The notes below the pieces were generated by a model that saw only the letters and a program-made list of their open reading frames with translations, ran no database searches and was not told the origin of the DNA. Shown one piece after another: positions 42,298 to 55,582 of a DNA stretch of 64,000 nt; position 1 is the first letter of the stretch, and the number at the start of each line of letters is the position of its first letter. The position numbers and the translations under genes were made by a program. The DNA lies in assembly GCF_052425735.1 (NCBI RefSeq), contig NC_135767.1:11842001-11906000 (forward strand), in the 5' to 3' direction. The DNA is from Oculina patagonica. Taxonomy: Eukaryota.

Positions 42298-44459
42298 CAT
42301 CTGTTTTGTTTAAATCTGATGATCGCATTTTTCGGCATTTACTAAAAAAAGAAAATTTTGACATGGCGGGAAAAATATTGACATGGCGGGAAAATTCCGC
42401 GGCCTCAGAAAGCAAATACGCATGGAATGCACCTTGTCCCCTGTAGTATTATCTTGTGTCTTCATGACTACGTCATGACGTCACAAGACAAAAAGAAAAA
42501 AAAGGTCCTGCCCACGAATTAGCACCAAGCGTGAGAGTCCCTCGGACAACAAAATGTCAACATATAGTGCTTTGTGTCGTTTCGAAATATCAGGATGAAA
42601 CTATGTGACACAAACATGATAAAGAAATTGATTCAAATGGTTTCCTGCTTGAAATAAATCGTGCAAATAGGTAATACGAGCATCAGTAAGGAGGTCTTTA
42701 CAACGTGTGTAAATACGGCCTATTTGAGCCGAGTGGTATTTGAGAGCCAATTGTGTAAATAGGATTCAACAAAGCTGCGTTAGCCAGGGATCAAACACAA
42801 CAAATTTACTGTAGCCTGGGTTGCAGCCGGGCGTGTTACAGAATCCTCGATATAGTCTGTCTGCGTAACGACTTCCAAAAGCTCGTTCCGATATCCCGCA
42901 GGTTTGCAAGGAACTGTGTATTCACTTTTGTTTGGCTAGTTTTATATTACTGTCATTACTCTCTAACGCGCTTTTGTTTTGCGGTCATGCTGACAGTCTT
43001 CCTTTGTTTTTCCTGTGGAAACGAAATGTTGGAGATTTCTGAAGATGGTTTGAAAAAGCCGTTCAGATTAACCTGCATAATTCCTCTGATGTCAATTCCT
43101 CTCCAAGCACACGAAGCAAGCGAGGAAACGGCTAGCGAACGAGCGTGCCTTGACTGCAACGCGGGCTTTGTTCAAAAGTGTAAAAAGAGCAGTTTGAAAT
43201 TAAGTTGATCATCTTCGTAATACGCTGGACGCAGCGTTCGAAATAAACAGGAGGACTCACTGCGGGAATTTTTTAGAGGTCACAATGTGTTCGTAAATTG
43301 CCAACAGGATACATCCGAATGATAATAACAATAACGCCTTTATATTTATCCTAGAAAATAAAATTTTTCGGCATTAAAGGGATGCTTAAAGGGTTGCCAT
43401 AAGCTCAAATTATCTTACTTCACAAACAAAACATTTACATAGTCCAGTAGACTTTTCATTATATATAACTTAGATGTTTGTTAATTGAGATAAACGTAGC
43501 TGTTATGATGAACGGAAGGAGCGGGTACACATAACAGCCGCTTTTGAATAAATATTTCATATCCTTAATGCCTCTTTTCTACTTGTATACCGTTTCGAAG
43601 GATGGCCTATGGAATTTGACAATGGGGGAAAAAGAAACCTAAAAACATCTAAACAAACCAAGCGGAAGAAGTTTTTAGAGTTTTAAAGTTTTAAGCCAGC
43701 GTGGTTATTGAGGGGTGGGAACATATTTTAAAAGTTTACTAATTTATATGCAAATATAACAAATATTCGCCCAGTAGGGCCTCAAACGCACCGTGGACGT
43801 CCGGAAATTTTAACTCATTTTTGTACGAAACTTTACAATCTTTAAGTAACTTCTGTCAAGTTTTTAAGAAATTTTGTTTTCAAATACGTCATATTTTGTC
43901 ACGAAATTATTCATTCGAATACGTGAACAAAATAACCATTAAGGGGGCAGTATGATGGGGATTTTGATGCATTTGTGTCCACAACAGAGCTACAATTATG
44001 ACTTAATAGCTTCGCTCATTCATTCACAATACGCGCCTAGAACACAAAGGTGAAGATAAAAAGTGAAACATTCAAAGGAAAGCAAAGTGTAATTAGTTTT
44101 TAACGATTTATTCAAAACACATAAGCAGAGTTTGAAACGTGCGCAGATGATACTTATGATTATACCTCTTTTTTCACTTTTTTTCATTTTGTTTTTAACA
44201 AAGCTAGACCATATTTTAGGTTTCTATTAATGTAAATATTTCTTTTGACTTTTGACTTTTCCAAGTGGTACTCATGATACTGCCTCTTTAAGATCGACAA
44301 TTATACCGTTGAATTGCGTGCGGTTTGACTCATCTGTTACAAAGACAGCTGTTTGAACTGTTTCAAACAATAAATTGTAGAACCGCGTGACTAACTACTA
44401 ACAATGATATGCGTCTCAGGTAAGTTTCATCTTCCAGAACAAGCCGATCTCAAGTGACA

Positions 44460-45395
44460 ATGGAAAGCTCCACGGCCTATGCAGAATACAAGGATATTCT
44501 CCATGTTCTTCTTTGCACAGACCATTTATCAGGACAACATTGGTTTTTAATTTCTGCTATAAACTTTCTGTTCTCCATTACTGCAATCATTGGGAATACC
44601 CTGATACTAGTTGCATTGCACAAGGAGTCTTCTCTTCATCCGCCATCAAAACTGTTGTATCGCTGCCTCGCAAACACTGATATTTTGGTTGGCCTTATTT
44701 CAGAACCAAGTGCTGCAATATATCAGGCATTCAGGGTAACTGAAAACCTCTCGACTGATCTTTGTTTTTACTCAGGAGTCTTCTATACAGTCAGTTTCAC
44801 AATATTGTCTGCAGTGTCTTTGCTAACATTGACAACAATAAGTGTGGACAGAGTTCTTGCTCTGTTGTTGGGGTTGAGATACAGACACATTGTAACTCTG
44901 TGGCGAGTACGAGCGTTAGTTATCTCATTTTGGATTTCCAGCCTTGCTATTTCTTCAATGATAATTTGGAATTTCACGGTTGCGAAAAGTTATAGCTATG
45001 CATTGATATTACTTTGCATTATAATGTCAACCGTTTGTTATTCGAAAATATTCCTCACGCTCCGCCATTATCAGACTCAAGTTCACCCGCACCAAGCACA
45101 ATCGAACGGAGGAGCAATTTCTCAGAATATAGCACGATACAAAACGACAGTTTTTGCCGCAGTGTGGGTACTAGTTGCATTAGTGGCTTGTTATTTGCCA
45201 TATAGTATAGTCATAGCTGTAATTACAAGTTATGGATCATCTCCATTTCTCGATGTCATCTGGGAATTAACAGCAACTCTTGTTTATTTAAACTCGTCTT
45301 TAAACCCGATTCTATATTGCTGGAAGATCCAAGAAGTAAGGCAAGAGGTGAAGAACACGATCACTCAGTTTCACTGCTGGGCAAATGATGTGTGA
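44460..45395 (+). CDS. Class A GPCR, cluster member 4
   Basis: 311 aa from ATG 44460, 7TM, SVDRV, CYLPY and NPILY. Confidence 0.92.
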   Translation: MESSTAYAEYKDILHVLLCTDHLSGQHWFLISAINFLFSITAIIGNTLILVALHKESSLHPPSKLLYRCLANTDILVGLISEPSAAIYQAFRVTENLSTDLCFYSGVFYTVSFTILSAVSLLTLTTISVDRVLALLLGLRYRHIVTLWRVRALVISFWISSLAISSMIIWNFTVAKSYSYALILLCIIMSTVCYSKIFLTLRHYQTQVHPHQAQSNGGAISQNIARYKTTVFAAVWVLVALVACYLPYSIVIAVITSYGSSPFLDVIWELTATLVYLNSSLNPILYCWKIQEVRQEVKNTITQFHCWANDV

Positions 45396-48300
45396 AAAAA
45401 AATTATTTCGCTGTGTTCGGCTTTAATTTGTGCTTCGGCTTTTAAAATTTGTGTTTCGGTGAACTTTACCTTGTTGCTCGATTACTGAAAAGTACTCAAA
45501 ATCAGAAGACAATTTTCATTAATAGGAAACACAAAATATACAAATTTGGTTAAACATGTCTGTCAAAATGTAGTTGCCATGGTAACGTAAGTTCCCGATA
45601 TTTGTTTTCAAGTTTCCTAATAAAATAATTAATTTCCGCAGTAAACTTCATCCGGCGACTCAAGCTACACAGATTTGAATATTTTATAAGCAAGAGACCG
45701 TTAAAAAAAAATGGGTTCATCGAAAAGAGAAAATACAACTTGGATGAAACATGGTCACCGGGCCGAGAAAAAAAGGAACTGAAAGAGGAAGATAATCGTT
45801 TATTTCTATTGTGCAAAACAAATTTATAAATTTAGACCATGAAGTAATAATGCAATCTTGACAACATTCTAGATATTATGTTGTGCTTACTAATACAGTT
45901 CATGCAAGCCGTGTGACTTACGCAAACTTCGGACTGAGTGTTACTAAACTGACTGCTTTTAAAGTGGTATTTGCTGTTCTGCACCCTGCCTTTCAAGCCA
46001 AAGCGGGTAGATAATTATTAACCACCTGATTGTAAGCTTCTCAAGCTTCTTGTTTAAAGTATAAGTTCTTAAGGCAAAGAAATTTATTTGAAATGACTTG
46101 CAAAACTCTGAGGCAGTTTGTATCCAGAGCTCCCGCTTGAGCACGATGGGGCAAACATGACGTTTTGAAAACGTTTGGTAAAAATAAATCAATTTGGTCG
46201 AGCTTTATTCTTTGTCTTCGTTCAGCACTTCAAAGAGCTTAAAGTAAATATACTGTATGTGCTTCTGTAGCGAGAAAATTTACAGCTTAAAGTCTAGATA
46301 GACTCGCAGTAATAAGAAAAAGACTCACGTCTCACAGGACATCACGGCATGGGATCAGAAAATCAACTTACGGTCAAGGAAAATCAAGTCATTTTCGTTA
46401 TAAAAGCAGGCTTAGCAATTCAGTAGAGTTTACTACCTTACATCTGAGATAAGCTTCCTTTCACCACAATCATTTTAGCCTAATTGTACCCTTAATGATG
46501 ACAGCCGCAGATTCAAATGCAACCAAACAAACTCGAATTGCACAAGGAGTCCGAAGTTATCTATCTATATCTGTTCAGCTGTCGAACGTAAATACCAAAT
46601 TAACGCACTGAGGTTCCGTTAAACTCACATATTAAAAAGGCAAATAGAAAAGAGCAGTTGGGTAATAACTTGCAGATGTTTTGCCGTGTAGCCGTTGACG
46701 CTGAGTAATGTCAACCGTTGTCTGTATTTTGTCTTGCCCTGCGAGCTCTATTTGTAGTCTACAATTTTTTTAATTTCCATTACACACGGAAACCTCGTAC
46801 CCAGACCTAATGCGTGCAAACGTGCAGACATACGCGACCCCCAATATTTTGTAGATTCGATGGATGTACCAATTTTGCTTAGTTATGGATGCTCCGCTAA
46901 AAAAAAAAATATTGCCACGAGAGGAAACAGTATCCAATGCATTGACTATCAGATTTCTCTGAAAACCAGTTGAACATTTTCGTGATGCTGAATTCTTCAA
47001 CTCTTCATTAGTTAAACAGTAACTCTTTTTGACTGTCATGTGTCGCTTTATTCAGTTACCATCTTGTTGCCATGTTCACTGATGACTATTTTCGTTTCAT
47101 AACACGAAATTAACTCCAAAAAGCGCTTTCCGCTATAAAGTGCCAGTTAGGAGAAAAATACAATGACAATATGCTTTGTGTCGTTTGCAAATGCCACGAT
47201 GAAAATATATGATGCATTAATAATGCGATTTACTGCTTCAAATGAAGACTGAAAGGAGGTTCAAGTATAAATTACTAAGGAAGTCTTTAACAGAAACAAA
47301 GGAAGTTTAAGCATAAGTAACTAAGGAAGTCTATCTCATAATGTGTTTAACTTACTTCCTTAATAGGCCTCTTTGCGTAATGTGGTACATTAAGCCCAGA
47401 ATGTGTAAATAGGCTTCAGCAAAACTCTACATAGCGGTCAAACATGGCAAACAGCTTGTCAATATTGTATTTAAGTACTTTAATTTTCTTATTTTAGTTT
47501 CCGCTCTAATAAACAGAACTTTTAAAAGTGTCTCCAATATCACGGATTTTAAAAGATTTTTGAACAGCTAGAATGATATATTTGCGTCGTAGGAAACTTT
47601 ATAATGATGGTCCATTTTTATTGCAAATTGCTATTTTAGAGCACTCAAACTGTTTAAAAGCGAGTTTGGCTGCGAATGGCTCTAATGGAAATGGATTGCA
47701 ATTTTAAAACGTTAACCAACGTTTTCAATTTGTTTCCGCGCGCCTTCAAAATGATCGATAATCATAGCCGAAGTTTGATTTCTATCCCCAAATAAAGGTT
47801 ATATCTTCAGTTAAATATTCAAAGATAGTGTTTTCATGAATAAAGTTGCCTACCACTTATATCAAAGCAGTTTAGACCAAAAATCTGCGAAATCCTTGTG
47901 ACATGGTCCCTTTAACGCAGTTTCATCGTTACGAACTTTAGTCGTTTACTTCATTTGGCCGCTTGCTTTACTTGGCTAGCTTGTTTGAAGAAATAGAGGC
48001 AGTCATTTTTAAGCGGGGATGATAAACCTACCTAGGTTTATATCTTTAACGGAGAATGATTTTTTTTTTTGTTTCGTTTAACGAGTTATCAAAAGCTCGG
48101 TGTGCCTCACCTCCCGAACCAAGAGACAAAAAATTATATATTAATACATAGGTCATTAGACTTTTCATTATTTAAATGTATATTATTCGTTATGACGAAC
48201 GAAAAGCTCGGACACTCACTCCGCTTTTGGATGAACTATTCAATATCCTTCACGCATCGTTATCCTTTGAATAATCTTTCAAAGGATGGCCTACGAAACT

Positions 48301-48596
48301 TCTCAATAGCAGGGAAAAAACCTTAACAATGATTAAACATACTGAGCACAAGAAAGTTAATTATGATAAAGATGCCAACTGGATGTGTACCACAAATAGA
48401 ACTGTTTTAAGTGGTTCTCACTACGTACTAAAAAAAAGAACAATATCAGCATGGAAAAATGGATTTTTGCTTTTTCTTTACTTTAATTATTAAAAAATGA
48501 TTTCAGTTGTAGGCACGGGGGTAGAAGATTGAGGAAGGGGGTCAAAAGTTATGGAAGAGCGGAAGACTAGTCTTATTTTAAAGGTAAAACGTCTAT

Positions 48597-49723
48597 TTAA
48601 CAATTAGATTATGAGCTCGAGATTTCTATCGTGTGATAGTTGATGAGGGCGAAGCCCGAATCAACTATCACACATAGAAATCGAGAGCGAATAATCTAAT
48701 TGTTTTAGTATAAATCTACTAGACGTTCAAAACTTTTCAAGACAGGCTCTCGTTTTTATTGAATAATGATGCAAATAAGTCACACAACACGCGGATAATA
48801 GACAACTGCACCACATTGCATTGGCTTCTGTTGCATTTCATTCACGATTTATTGAAACCGTTATATGCCCGAAACTGAAGGAAAAGCCAAGTTTTTTATT
48901 GTAAAATGACGATTGAAAGATGTACTGACGTACAAGGGCCCTTGGAAGTCAAGTTTTTTTAAATTCGAAAACGTAAAAGATTAAAAAAAAGTTAAGCGAG
49001 TTGTTCGCAAGGAAGAAACCACATTGCACTGTTTAGCTTCTGTGTGCGCCTTTGCATTTCATTCACGATTTATTTAAACCGTCGTTTGCTCGAAATTGAA
49101 CTAAAAGCCGGATTTTCATTGTAAAATGACAATTTAAAGATAGACTGACTTACAAAGGCCCTTTGGAAGTCAAGTTGTTTTAAATGTAGGAAATGTGAAC
49201 GATAAGAAATTTATGAAAAGTTGAACGAGTCGCCCGCAACCTTGAATTCGCTTTCAATTTTGTTGTTTTATTTAAGTCTCATTGATGCATAAAAAAACTT
49301 GCAGGTCGAATCTGTTTAGCCTTTCTTTTACTGCTCCTCGATGGGACGATGAAACTGTGTTAGTTTGCAAAGACATTTTAAACTTTATTTCCACAAAATG
49401 TCTCGGTGAAACGCATCTCTGAATGTTATAAAATTATAGATTCGCCCGCTTTTAAAAGCGTAAATGAATATTAATTGCTTTTCTTACCGTGTAAAATCTT
49501 CATTACATATTTCGGTACAGTCTTTATCTTCTCCAACATCGCCTGGAATAGTAAATAATCCAAGACCTTCTTTACGGTCAATTTAAAAGCGAAAAAGCGG
49601 TGACCATTCTGTCGACAACCGCACGCTGTTTTGCTACTCACCTTCTACAACAGAATAGATAGTGAGTAGCGTAGCCAATCAGAGAACAGCATTCGTGATA
49701 GAACGCTAGTAGATTTATACTAA
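48597..49723. mobile_element. Non-autonomous hairpin-terminated element without TSD (candidate Crypton-type)
   Basis: Absent from the duplicated copy (empty site GTCTAT|ACCTAA at about 54204). Hairpin of about 106 nt at the left end. 48705-48722 is the perfect reverse complement of 49706-49723. Confidence 0.85.
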
Positions 49724-50067
49724 ACCTAAATAGTATAATAAATGCCGTGTATTCACCAAGTAGGTACTTATGATTAAACCTCTGTTTTTCACTTTTTTCA
49801 TTTTGTTTTTAACAAAGCTAGACCATATTTTAGGTTTCTATTAATGTAAATATTTCTTTTGACTTTTGACTTTTCCAAGTGATACTCATGATACTGCTTC
49901 TTTAAGATCGACAATTATACCGTTTAAATACGTGCGGTTTGATTAATCTGTTACAGCTGTTTGATCTGTTTCAAACAATAAATTGTAGAACCGCGTGACT
50001 AACTACTAACAAAGATATGCGTCTCAGGTAAGTTTCATCTTCCAGAACAAGCCGATCTCAAGTGACA

Positions 50068-51003
50068 ATGGAAAACTCTACGGCCTATGCAGAATACAAG
50101 GATATTCTCCATGTTCTTCTTTGCACCGACCATTTATCAGGAAAACATTGGATTTTAATTTCTGCTATAAACTTTCTGTTCTCCATTACTGCAATCATTG
50201 GGAATACCCTGATACTAATTGCATTGCAAAAGGAGTCTTCTCTTCATCCGCCATCAAAACTGTTGTATCGCTGCCTCGCAATCACTGATATTTTGGTTGG
50301 CCTTATTTCAGAACCAAGTGCTGCAATATATCAGGCATTCAGGGTAACTGAAAACCTCTCGACTGATCTTTGTTTTTACTCAGGAGTCTTCTATACAGTC
50401 AGTTTCACAATATTGTCTGCAGTGTCTTTGCTAACATTGACAACAATAAGTGTGGACAGACTTCTCGCTCTATTGATGGGGTTGAGATACAGACAAATTG
50501 TAACTCTGAGGCGAGTCCAAGCGTTAGTTATCTCATTTTGGATTTCCAGCCTTGTTATTTCTTCAATGATAATTTGGAATTTCACGGTTGCGAAAAGTTA
50601 TAGCTATTCATTGATATTACTTTGCATTTTAATGTCAACCGGTTGTTACTCGAAAATATTCCTCACGCTCCGCCATTATCGGACTCAAGTTCACCAGCAC
50701 CAAGCACAATCGAACGGAGGAGCAATTTCTCAGAATATAGCACGATACAAAACGACAGTTTTTGCCGCAGTGTGGGTACTAGTTGCATTAGTGGCTTGTT
50801 ATTTGCCATATAGTATAGTCATAGCTGTAATTACAAGTTATGGATCATCTCCATTTCTCGATGTCATCTGGGAATTAACAGCAACTCTTGTTTATTTAAA
50901 CTCGTCTTTAAACCCGATTCTTTATTGCTGGAAGATCCAAGAAGTAAGGCAAGAGGTGAAGAACACGATCATTCAGTTTCACTGCTGGGCAAATGATGTG
51001 TGA
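50068..51003 (+). CDS. Class A GPCR, cluster member 5 (tandem duplicate of member 4)
   Basis: 311 aa from ATG 50068, about 18 aa differences from member 4. Confidence 0.92.
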   Translation: MENSTAYAEYKDILHVLLCTDHLSGKHWILISAINFLFSITAIIGNTLILIALQKESSLHPPSKLLYRCLAITDILVGLISEPSAAIYQAFRVTENLSTDLCFYSGVFYTVSFTILSAVSLLTLTTISVDRLLALLMGLRYRQIVTLRRVQALVISFWISSLVISSMIIWNFTVAKSYSYSLILLCILMSTGCYSKIFLTLRHYRTQVHQHQAQSNGGAISQNIARYKTTVFAAVWVLVALVACYLPYSIVIAVITSYGSSPFLDVIWELTATLVYLNSSLNPILYCWKIQEVRQEVKNTIIQFHCWANDV

Positions 51004-54000
51004 AAAAATTATTTCGCTGTGTTCGGCTTTAATTTGTGCTTCGGCTTTTAAAATTTGTGTTTCGGTGAACTTTACCTTGTTGCTCGATTACTGAAAAGTA
51101 CTCAAAATCGGAAGACAATTTTCATTAATAGGAAACACAAACTATACAAATTTGGTTAAACATGTCTGTCAAAATGTAGTTGCCATGGTAACGTAAGTTC
51201 CCGATATTTGTTTTCAAGTTTCCTAATAAAATAATTAATTTCCGCAGTAAACTTCATCCGGCGACTCAAGCTACACAGATTTGAATATTTTATAAGCAAG
51301 AGACCGTTAAAAAAAAATGGGTTCATCGAAAAGAGAAAATACAACTTGGATGAAACATGGTCACCGGGCCGAGAAAAAGAAGGAACTGAAAGAGGAAGAT
51401 AACCGTTTATTTCTATTGTGCAAAACAAATTTATAAATTTAGACCATGAAGTAATAATGCAATCTTGACAACATTCTAGATATTATGTTGTGCTTACTAA
51501 TACAGTTCATGCAAGCCGTGTGACTTACGCAAACTTCGGACTGAGTGTTACTAAACTGACTGCTTTTAAAGTGGTATTTGCTGTTCTGCACCCTGCCTTT
51601 CAAGCCAAAGCGGGTAGATAATTATTAACCACCTGATTGTGAGCTTCTCAAGCTTCTTGTTTAAAGTATAAGTTCTTAAGGCAAAGAAATTTATTTGAAA
51701 TGACTTGCAAAACTCTGAGGCAGTTTGTATCCAGAGCTCCCGCTTGAGCACGATGGGGCAAACATGACGTTTTGAAAACGTTTGGTAAAAATAAATCAAT
51801 TTGGTCGAGCTTTGTTCTTTGTCTTCGTTCAGCACTTCAAAGAGCTTAAAGTAAATATACTGTATGTGCTTCTGTAGCGAGAAAATTTACAGCTTAAAGT
51901 CTAGATAGACTCGCAGTAATAAGAAAAAGACTCACGTCTCACAGGACATCACGGCATGGGATCAGAAAATCAACTTACGGTCAAGGAAAATCAAATCATT
52001 TTCGTTATAAAAGCAGGCTTAGCAATTCAGTAGAGTTTACTACCTTACATCTGAGATAAGCTTCCTTTCACCACAATCATTTTAGCCTAATTGTACCTTT
52101 AATGATGACAGCCGCAGATTCAAATGCAACCAAACAAACTCGAATTGCACAAGGAGTCCGAAGTTATCTATCTATATCTGTTCAGCTGTCGAACGTAAAT
52201 ACCAAATTAACGCACTGAGGTTCCGTTAAACTCACATATTAAAAAGGCAAATAGAAAAGAGCAGTTGGGTAATAACTTGCAGATGTTTTGCCGTGTAGCC
52301 GTTGACGCTGAGTAATGTCAACCGTTGTCTGTATTTTGTCTTGCCCTGCGAGCTCTATTTGCAGTCTACAATTTTTTTAATTTCCATTACACACGGAAAC
52401 CTCGTACCCAGACCTAATGCGTGCAAACGTGCAGACATACGCGACCCCCAATATTTTGTAGATTCGATGGATGTACCAATTTTGCTTAGTTATGGATGCT
52501 CCGCTAAAAAAAAAAAAATATTGCCACGAGAGGAAACAGTATCCAATGCATTGACTATCAGATTTCTCTGAAAACCAGTTGAACATTTTCGTGATGCTGA
52601 ATTCTTCAACTCTTCATTAGTTAAACAGTAACTCTTTTTGACTGTCATGTGTCGCTTTATTCAGTTACCATCTTGTTGCCATGTTCACTGATGACTATTT
52701 TCGTTTCATAACACGAAATTAACTCCAAAAAGCGCTTTCCGCTATAAAGTGCCAGTTAGGAGAAAAATACAATGACAATATGCTTTGTGTCGTTTGCAAA
52801 TGCCACGATGAAAATATATGATGCATTAATAATGCGATTTACTGCTTCAAATGAAGACTGAAAGGAGGTTCAAGTATAAATTACTAAGGAAGTCTTTAAC
52901 AGAAACAAAGGAAGTTTAAGCATAAGTAACTAAGGAAGTCTATCTCATAATGTGTTTAACTTACTTCCTTAATAGGCCTCTTTGCGTAATGTGGTACATT
53001 AAGCCCAGAATGTGTAAATAGGCTTCAGCAAAACTCTACATAGCGGTCAAACATGGCAAACAGCTTGTCAATATTGTATTTAAGTACTTTAATTTTCTTA
53101 TTTTAGTTTCCGCTCTAATAAACAGAACTTTTAAAAGTGTCTCCAATATCACGGATTTTAAAAGATTTTTGAACAGCTAGAATGATATATTTGCGTCGTA
53201 GGAAACTTTATAATGATGGTCCATTTTTATTGCAAATTGCTATTTTAGAGCACTCAAACTGTTTAAAAGCGAGTTTGGCTGCGAATGGCTCTAATGGAAA
53301 TGGATTGCAATTTTAAAACGTTAACCAACGTTTTCAATTTGTTTCCGCGCGCCTTCAAAATGATCGATAATCATAGCCAAAGTTTGATTTCTATCCCCAA
53401 ATAAAGGTTATATCTTCAGTTAAATATTCAAAGATAGTGTTTTCATGAATAAAGTTGCCTACCACTTATATCAAAGCAGTTTAGACCAAAAATCTGCGAA
53501 ATCCTTGTGACATGGTCCCTTTAACGCAGTTTCATCGTTACGAACTTTAGTCGTTTACTTCATTTGGCCGCTTGCTTTACTTGGCTAGCTTGTTTGAAGA
53601 AATAGAGGCAGTCATTTTTAAGCGGGGATGATAAACCTACCTAGGTTTATATCTTTAACGGAGAATGATTTTTTTTTTGTTTCGTTTAACGAGTTATCAA
53701 AAGCTCGGTGTGCCTCACCTCCCGAACCAAGAGACAAAAAATTATATATTAATACATAGGTCATTAGACTTTTCATTATTTAAATGTATATTATTCGTTA
53801 TGACGAACGAAAAGCTCGGACACTCACTCCGCTTTTGGATGAACTATTCAATATCCTTCACGCATCGTTATCCTTTGAATAATCTTTCAAAGGATGGCCT
53901 ACGAAACTTCTCAATAGCAGGGAAAAAACCTTAACAATGATTAAACATACTGAGCACAAGAAAGTTAATTATGATAAAGATGCCAACTGGATGTGTACCA

Positions 54001-54652
54001 CAAATAGAACTGTTTTAAGTGGTTCTCACTACGTACTAAAAAAAAGAACAATATCAGCATGGAAAAATGGATTTTTGCTTTTTCTTTACTTTAATTATTA
54101 AAAAATGATTTCAGTTGTAGGCACGGGGGTAGAAGATTGAGGAAGGGGGTCAAAAGTTATGGAAGAGCGGAAGACTAGTCTTATTTTAAAGGTAAAACGT
54201 CTATACCTAAATAGTATAATAAATGCCGTGTATTCACCAAGTAGGTCTGGAAAAAGCACTTTCGTAGGATGCGTCAAATGTTTCAAGTCCTTCTTAATAG
54301 TAAATTGAAAAAGGCTAAATTGTAATTTGTGGCTTTTAAGAAATGTCGATCATTTTCAAATGGATAATAATGCGACGGAAATAAAACGACTTTCTCATTC
54401 ATGCAGGTTAAAAAAAGTCTTAGATCGGCAGCTGTTCTGCTTAATTACGTGCAGTTTTACTCGTCTGTTTCCATTTTGCTGTTACGGATGGACAGCTCTT
54501 CGAGCTTGTTTCGAACAATTGTAGAAGTGAACCATGGACGAGTGACAAAGACAAAGCCCACCCGACTCACTACTAACAATGTAATTTGACGAGTTGAATA
54601 AAAAACGTCTCAGATACTTTTATCTGTCGAAACACGCGGACCTCAAGTGGTA

Positions 54653-55582
54653 ATGGAAAACTCTACGGCATATACAGAAAACAACAAGAATCTTCAAGTT
54701 CTTCTTTGCACAGCCCATTCATCAGGAAAACACTGGTTTTTCTTTTCTTCTTTGGACATTCTCTTCTCCATTACTGCAATCACAGGGAATACCCTTATTC
54801 TAATTGCGTTGCACAAGGAGTCTTCTCTTCATCCGCCATCAAAACTTCTGTATCGCTGCCTCGCAATCAGTGATCTTTTAGTTGGCCTCATTTCAGAACC
54901 AAGCGCTGCTTTATATCATGCATTCTTGGTAAAAGGAAACCTCTCGACTGATCTTTGTTTTTATTCGGCAATGTTTACTGCAGTCAGTTTTACAGTATTG
55001 TCTGCAGTGTCTTTGCTAACAATGACCGCAATAAGTGTGGACAGACTTCTCGCTCTATTGTTGGGGTTGAGATACAGACACTTTGTAACTCTAATGCGAG
55101 TTCGAGCGTTAGCTATCTTATTTTGGATTTCCAGCCTTGCTATTTCTTCAACGATAATTTGGAAATTCACTTTTGCGAAAAGTTATAACTATGCATTAAT
55201 ATTACTTTGCATTATTGTGTCAGCCTTTTGCTACTCGAAAATCTTCATCATACTCCGCCATCAACAAAATGCCCTTCAGCAACATCGAAAACAGTCAAAC
55301 GGTAAAAGAAGTTACTTTAATGTAGAAAGATACAAAAAGACAGTGGCTACCGCAATGTGGGTAGAAGTTACATTACTGGCTTGTTACCTGCCATATAGTA
55401 TAGTTATAGCTATAGTTACTTTTTGCGGATCATCTCCATTTGTTGATATCGTTTGGGAATTAACCGCAACTCTTGTTTATTTAAACTCTTCTTTAAACCC
55501 ATTTCTTTATTGTTGGAAAATAAGGGAAGTTAAACAAGAAGTGAAGAACTTGATAAGACGGTTCTTGTGTAAGTCGAATTAG
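54653..55582 (+). CDS. Class A GPCR, cluster member 6
   Basis: 309 aa from ATG 54653, 7TM, SVDRL, CYLPY and NPFLY. Closest to member 3. Confidence 0.93.
   Translation: MENSTAYTENNKNLQVLLCTAHSSGKHWFFFSSLDILFSITAITGNTLILIALHKESSLHPPSKLLYRCLAISDLLVGLISEPSAALYHAFLVKGNLSTDLCFYSAMFTAVSFTVLSAVSLLTMTAISVDRLLALLLGLRYRHFVTLMRVRALAILFWISSLAISSTIIWKFTFAKSYNYALILLCIIVSAFCYSKIFIILRHQQNALQQHRKQSNGKRSYFNVERYKKTVATAMWVEVTLLACYLPYSIVIAIVTFCGSSPFVDIVWELTATLVYLNSSLNPFLYCWKIREVKQEVKNLIRRFLCKSN

Follow-up and report, generated by a model that had tools for sequence, protein, structure and literature searches.

The 1127-bp insertion found at positions 48597-49723 of the window (i.e. the whole analysed stretch of 64,000 nt from the Oculina patagonica genome) is, on balance, probably a non-autonomous Crypton, in which a folded, attC-like hairpin attachment site is split by the crossover and which would be mobilised in trans by a Cre-fold tyrosine recombinase (YR). 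Its two ends can be described as parts of one hairpin attachment site that is cut asymmetrically, a simpler statement than the splint for closing a circle that had been proposed in the first-pass annotation of this DNA.

The borders of the insertion are fixed by a tandem duplicate present in the same window, whose left flank (45894-48596 versus 51501-54204) is 99.67% identical over 2.7 kb and in which the empty paralogous site reads AAACGTCTAT directly followed by ACCTAAATAG, exactly and without the insertion. Since the empty site is lost when the border is moved by one base either way, the borders are exact and there is no target site duplication (TSD), which agrees with what the first-pass annotation had concluded from this duplicate; in the window the element is flanked by GTCTAT (left) and ACCTAA (right). 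A contig of one DNA run skips exactly the 1127 bases between 48597 and 49723, and may derive from the paralogous empty site. With regard to the surroundings of the locus, we observed three GPCR-like genes in tandem (44412-45356, 50020-50964 and 54606-55549; about 82% alike), with the insertion situated upstream of the middle gene, ~340 bp from its start codon, and missing from the next repeat unit.

The left end of the element (Table 1) is a hairpin with a folding energy of -39.8 kcal/mol (z = -12 versus shuffles), in which the loop is closed by GC/GC (apex GCGAAGC) and the stem is interrupted by three tandem G.A/A.G mismatch pairs (48613-14/48689-90, 48619-20/48683-84 and 48645-46/48658-59). 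The foot of this hairpin is directly followed by a perfect inverted copy of the right terminus (the 18-mer having 2 occurrences in the window versus 0.05 expected), and the reverse complement of 48696-48722 equals the right end joined to the left end, minus the first TT. The hairpin with its apex, the adjoining 18-bp copy and an interior complementary to the joined ends apart from TT had all been pointed out in the first-pass annotation, and each of them was recovered here. In the family to which the element belongs (hereafter family A) the joined-end junction reads CTAA followed by TTAACAAT. The segment 48597-49723 contains no open reading frame (ORF) of 60 aa or longer, and no Rfam family scored above threshold within it.

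Table 1. Features of the element and of its insertion site (coordinates refer to the window)
Feature	Position	Strand	Remarks
Left target half-site CTAT, host DNA, putative crossover directly 3'	48593-48596	+	21 independent flank classes
TT at the very start of the element, left out of the pairing between joined ends and interior	48597-48598	+	TT in family D too; TTT(A) in family B
106-nt terminal hairpin: 5' arm 48599-48650, loop GAA 48651-48653, 3' arm 48654-48704	48599-48704	+	
Target-like core CTAT-CGTGTG-ATAG in the hairpin 5' arm	48626-48639	+	insertion site of family B in other copies, in both orientations
Internal inverted copy of the right terminus, abutting the hairpin foot (splint half)	48705-48722	+	18/18 complementary to 49706-49723
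Non-coding body, containing an internal direct duplication (about 220 bp)	48831-49185	+	
Right terminus, ends ..CTAA	49706-49723	+	invariant in 29/29 copies
Host spacer ACCTAA and right target half-site ATAG	49724-49733	+	R at +6 and ATA at +7 to +9 in 15-20/21 flank classes
Empty paralogous site, tandem duplicate	54195-54214	+	

Within the genome of the coral Oculina patagonica (529 Mb) family A is represented by at least 40 full-length copies (93-97% identity), and the 19-mer of its right end has 236 matches as compared to 0 for the control, which at two matches each corresponds to about 118 elements. The 29 full copies inspected all terminate in TATACTAA and start with TTAACAATTAG, 3 of the 29 having one substitution each in the first 11 bases. 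Taken together, the excess of the 19-mer over its control and the uniformity of the termini argue that the described anatomy is not due to chance. In order to derive a target logo, the flanks of the 29 full copies were collapsed to 21 independent classes, which on the left side show T at -3 and A at -2 in 21/21 classes, C or A at -4 and mostly T at -1, and on the right side a purine at +6 in 20/21 classes and ATA at +7 to +9 in 15-18 of the 21. Judged by these flanks, the target of family A is the palindrome MTAT-N6-ATAK, with a predicted crossover directly after MTAT, and the window copy (CTAT, then ACCTAA ATAG) obeys this rule. The genome-wide collection of copies that had been suggested in the first-pass annotation thus yielded uniform ends and a defined target preference; what it did not yield are symmetric terminal inverted repeats (TIRs) with TSDs, all 29 flank pairs being devoid of a TSD. 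The host spacer adjoins the right end in 29/29 copies. A genome-wide pattern search for the joined-end junction returned 7 exact matches and 2 near-matches, all of which run into the left end of another element, and among the about 118 copies covered by it no spacer-swapped product was found. Such head-to-tail tandems are expected, because MTAT + TTAACA + ATTAG is itself target-like. Furthermore, 8 family A copies sit at one target motif inside another repeat, and in two family A copies the target motif of the hairpin itself carries an insertion of family B (about 510-530 bp, same end design), once in forward (L043) and once in reverse (L042) orientation, with the hairpin end adjoining CTAT both times.

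The same borders and flanks bear on the propositions that a Y1 HUH transposase mobilises an element of the IS200/IS605 kind here, or that a hairpin MITE is nested with an ordinary TIR element, both of which we regard as highly improbable. The insertion 3' of a short fixed motif (here a tetranucleotide), the missing TSD, the end hairpins and the single-strand logic are indeed reminiscent of IS608, and the 18-bp inverted repeat taken by itself resembles a TIR pair; against nesting, the empty site lacks both parts at once, 29/29 copies share both outer borders, and no separate TSD flanks the segment that the 18-bp inverted repeat delimits, while against an IS200/IS605 origin, the Y1 HUH transposase is missing from the coral chromosomes. 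The only Y1_Tnp (PF01797) match of the assembly, of the IS200/IS605 type, is situated on a small unplaced contig (G000:C671:47688-48038) that is possibly bacterial.

The design of the ends is conserved beyond family A. For both family A and family D, joining the right end to the left end without its TT gives the reverse complement of the interior, and family B displays the same complementarity with a small internal loop at the TT position. Of the 18 terminal pairs, 8 are different between families A and D, and 8/8 changes are compensated, so that the covariation between termini and internal segment envisaged in the first-pass annotation is present between these families; within family A, whose copies are too young, covariation carries no signal. 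In line with this conservation, contigs from coral metagenomes contain family-D-like elements that keep the ends and the flank ATAT before the border, and which, being only 72-75% identical, come from other species. The DIRS-like geometry that had been claimed for the window element (i.e. an internal complementary region, ICR) is therefore retained in other families and other species, and the terminal/internal complementarity holds in A, B, D and the metagenome elements. One 2053-bp coral metagenome contig (L051; Ga0099819_1045522) has the joined ends of a YR-encoding element in its interior and an exact 110-bp terminal overlap, which defines a 1943-bp unit and may reflect either a circular or a tandem template. 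A dominant go-back joint was not encountered in the contigs of public sequencing runs (contigs only), nor was a circular or single-stranded form of the element seen there.

The enzyme that we propose for this family is encoded by its longer relatives. The first of these (L046:615-6240), found through a right-end 19-mer site located 2.4 kb from a DUF3504 match, is 5.6 kb in length and has the same 18-nt termini, hairpin arms that are 97% and internal segments that are 71-76% alike, and flanks that obey the MTAT-N6-ATAK rule; it is single-copy and decayed, its YR ORF being split by a 1.3-kb repeat. The closest YR paralogues of L046 belong to elements with an equal design. One of these, a complete element of 1974 bp (L049), combines a 114-nt hairpin and 18/18 termini with a 403-aa YR as its only gene, and an intact 440-aa YR lies between 13-bp matching termini at L048, where the left terminus is missing. 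DUF3504 was detected at 46-55 bits in L046, L048, L049 and L050-L053, and passes its cut-off, whereas the Pfam model PF00589 remains just under its own (24-25 bits versus 27.1); the ORFs of L048 and L049 cover DUF3504 together with the C-terminal part of the phage-integrase model. The motifs GKRGRE, NHCVRAT and GHKSD..ESY, which make up the R..HxxR..Y catalytic set, are present in the relatives, and the predicted YR structure (pLDDT 74) matches best with QRICH1 and then with Cre, over both domains. The YR gene is placed and oriented alike in 7/7 relatives, where it runs antisense to the strand with the 5'-terminal hairpin. Both KIAA1958 and QRICH1 are DUF3504 genes that have been linked to Cryptons (Kojima and Jurka 2011, PMC3212892), and the annotation of the YR homologues as KIAA1958-like, together with the structural match to QRICH1, is what points to a possible affinity with CryptonA. 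Named homologues occur in Porites, Acropora, Montipora, Stylophora and Dendronephthya.

An intact autonomous copy having the exact ends of family A was not found. Among the listed right-end 19-mer sites, DUF3504 matches within 2.5 kb were confined to two, namely L046, which is a real partner, and L047, which was rejected as its match belongs to a neighbour outside the element; the 7.3 kb that separate two right ends in L042 gave a TPR match only and no transposase. The GIY-YIG ORFs of L046 were likewise rejected as genes of the element, since they belong to a nested, very abundant head-to-head repeat. The latter (L046:985-2721) is a perfect head-to-head palindrome of a young, Penelope-like repeat nested in the Crypton relative, with more than 40 near-identical copies genome-wide. 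The first-pass annotation had left the choice between a tyrosine recombinase and an HUH enzyme, and had suggested searching longer copies for a DUF3504 YR or a Rep-helicase (RepHel). Such copies do encode the former, and in L046, L048 and L049 the same end design goes along with a Cre-fold YR as the only gene; the HUH alternative is disfavoured, RepHel being encoded in no relative.

On the basis of end layout the element had at first been favoured as a member of the Helitron2/Helentron group, a view that was dropped in the light of the YR-encoding relatives and of a different Helentron 3' end. Under this proposition, which now appears improbable to us, it would be a non-autonomous Helentron derivative (HINE) mobilised by a RepHel HUH enzyme through rolling-circle transposition, and the YR of the long relatives would represent cargo. 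The layout of the minus strand does fit the Helitron2 definition, with asymmetric terminal inverted repeats of which the 5' one is at the terminus and the 3' copy directly upstream of a 3' terminal hairpin, without TSD (PMC3627910, PMC4067079); head-to-tail arrays occur in both, and the genome holds 113 Helitron_like_N matches. Conversely, the 1974 bp of L049 have room for one gene, which is the YR, none of the listed right-end 19-mer sites is accompanied by a suitably oriented RepHel match, insertion takes place at a 4-6-4 palindrome (MTAT-N6-ATAK) in place of a TT or T-rich site, and the hairpins measure 106-185 nt as compared to 5-20 bp in Helitron2/Helentron elements. Moreover, the one Helentron family examined as a control (2495-aa ORF) has a 3' end, at L045:~4246, that consists of a 5-bp stem and a T-rich tail. 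We consider the likeness to Helitron2 to be a resemblance and not membership. The control Helentron itself (L044/L045; G000:C1:18323300-18343299) has an uninterrupted ORF and is present in at least 9 copies that are 97-98% alike, and its 3' end is abutted by a satellite-like repeat in this copy. At a distance of 5 kb downstream of its ORF we observed a hairpin end of family C (L045:7240-7427), preceded by a (TTTA)n microsatellite and with no matching other end within 20 kb, which is probably a truncated independent insertion.

Returning to the Crypton reading, we infer that the gene-less element is moved in trans by the Cre-fold YR, with exchange of a single strand and an ssDNA or circular intermediate. 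In the joined state, one long imperfect hairpin would be made up of the right terminus together with TT and the terminal hairpin, and a cut in its 5' arm (18 nt inwards, at the unpaired TT) would give the integrated element; the interior would be complementary to the joined ends precisely because a single hairpin is cut inside its 5' arm. The YR would cut 3' of TAA where the element ends are joined and 3' of MTAT within the target MTAT-N6-ATAK, that one strand would be exchanged, and replication would then fix the single-strand product, a sequence of events that would leave no TSD, place the hairpin end beside MTAT and place the host spacer beside the right end. The two cut sites (element ends in ..CTAA, left flanks in ..MTAT) have TA(W) before the cut, and nothing else, in common. 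The single crossover position, the constant location of the spacer on the right side and the lack of swapped spacers fit single-strand exchange followed by replication.

Further indications come from the stem mismatches of six hairpins, which amount to 27 G.A or A.G versus 1 C.T (p = 2e-7), a count that, given that the six hairpins belong to related families, does not represent independent events. The G.A mismatches always occur as tandem pairs, and the loops are of the GNA type closed by C-G, on one strand. Tandem G.A pairs and GNA loops stabilise only the strand bearing them when folded as DNA. As nearest-neighbour folding energies are equal for both strands, the strand argument draws on this known stability of G.A and GNA. 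The one-strand code suggests folding as ssDNA of the strand on which the hairpin is 5'-terminal (the one antisense to the YR gene), and in this indirect manner it supports the folding as single-stranded nucleic acid that the first-pass annotation had assumed.

The main rival of this explanation retains the family and the Crypton YR and invokes a conventional duplex reaction, in which the junction core of a dsDNA circle (CTAA-N7-TTAG in family A and ATAA-N7-TTAT in family D) recombines with the target core, and the palindrome provides extra recombinase-binding sites or a cruciform; we judge it to be rather unlikely. The dyad symmetry of the junction resembles that of the target, cores similar to the target lie in the hairpin arms, where a dimer could bind them in the duplex, dsDNA circles are the assumption of published Crypton models (PMC3212892), and unlike spacers could block the second exchange without the involvement of any ssDNA. 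Nevertheless, neither the 27:1 preponderance of G.A over C.T nor the restriction of GNA triloops to a single strand is accounted for by a duplex binding site, and among the about 118 copies there is no alternative spacer configuration.

As in the animal Cryptons (CryptonA, with a DUF3504-type YR) and their non-autonomous derivatives, in the coral elements the YR is the only gene, a TSD is lacking, and copies without a gene have the same ends as the autonomous element, which they greatly exceed in number. The fungal and stramenopile Cryptons have a short direct repeat common to the element end and the target. According to a survey, animal Cryptons are devoid of every type of terminal repeat (Kojima and Jurka 2011, PMC3212892), in contrast to which the coral family is characterized by ends made of a long strand-coded hairpin and an 18-nt stem piece, by a palindromic target and by self-nesting. 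With DIRS retrotransposons, whose cDNA intermediates are single-stranded, it shares an interior complementary to the two termini placed side by side and YR integration without TSD (PMC7192593). It differs from them, whose equipment comprises reverse transcriptase/RNase H besides the YR, inverted LTRs and the ICR, in that the relatives encode no reverse transcriptase, RNase H or methyltransferase (L049 has room for the YR alone), and in that the complementary segment adjoins the terminal hairpin, whereas the DIRS ICR is a separate region near one LTR.

The closest functional parallels are bacterial. In integrons and in CTXphi, the recombination sites attC (PMC2727003) and attP(+) are one-strand hairpins marked by unpaired bases, at which a single strand is exchanged without a need for homologous spacers. 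With these sites the coral family would share a crossover located in the stem and a short stem piece that lands at the other end of the integrated unit, as in an integron cassette, in which the attC stem is divided at its base. These systems employ IntI and XerCD, respectively, in contrast to the coral family, which has a eukaryotic Crypton YR, is marked by tandem G.A pairs and a GNA triloop, and is known from sequence alone. We put forward, tentatively and as somewhat less than an even chance, that Crypton YR transposons recombine as folded ssDNA by way of an attC/CTXphi-like split-stem hairpin, and that the interior complementary to the joined ends is the DNA-transposon counterpart, possibly the forerunner, of the DIRS ICR.

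Non-autonomous Cryptons are known already; a hairpin or split-stem site was not described for Cryptons in the literature that our searches covered. To our knowledge, no experiment has shown how Cryptons move. The exact ends and the YR-encoding relatives give a concrete and testable picture of Crypton insertion, and the family offers, besides these ends, a junction sequence, a 14-bp target rule, a small intact recombinase of 403-440 aa and a young, markable 1.1-kb passenger. A mechanism of the sort predicted by the single crossover position and by the hairpin code on one strand is to date known from integrons of bacteria and a cholera phage only, and the occurrence of the same geometry in DIRS retrotransposons links two eukaryotic classes of tyrosine-recombinase elements. 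Moreover, as the end layout mimics that of Helitron2, structure-based annotation may misfile such elements.

Among the individual copies of family A, one (L029; G000:C5:12319511-12320634) has a hairpin in which the outer part, but not the apex, is inverted into its complementary form, and is also without 16 nt of the internal right-end copy, which resembles the product of a recombination between the two arms.
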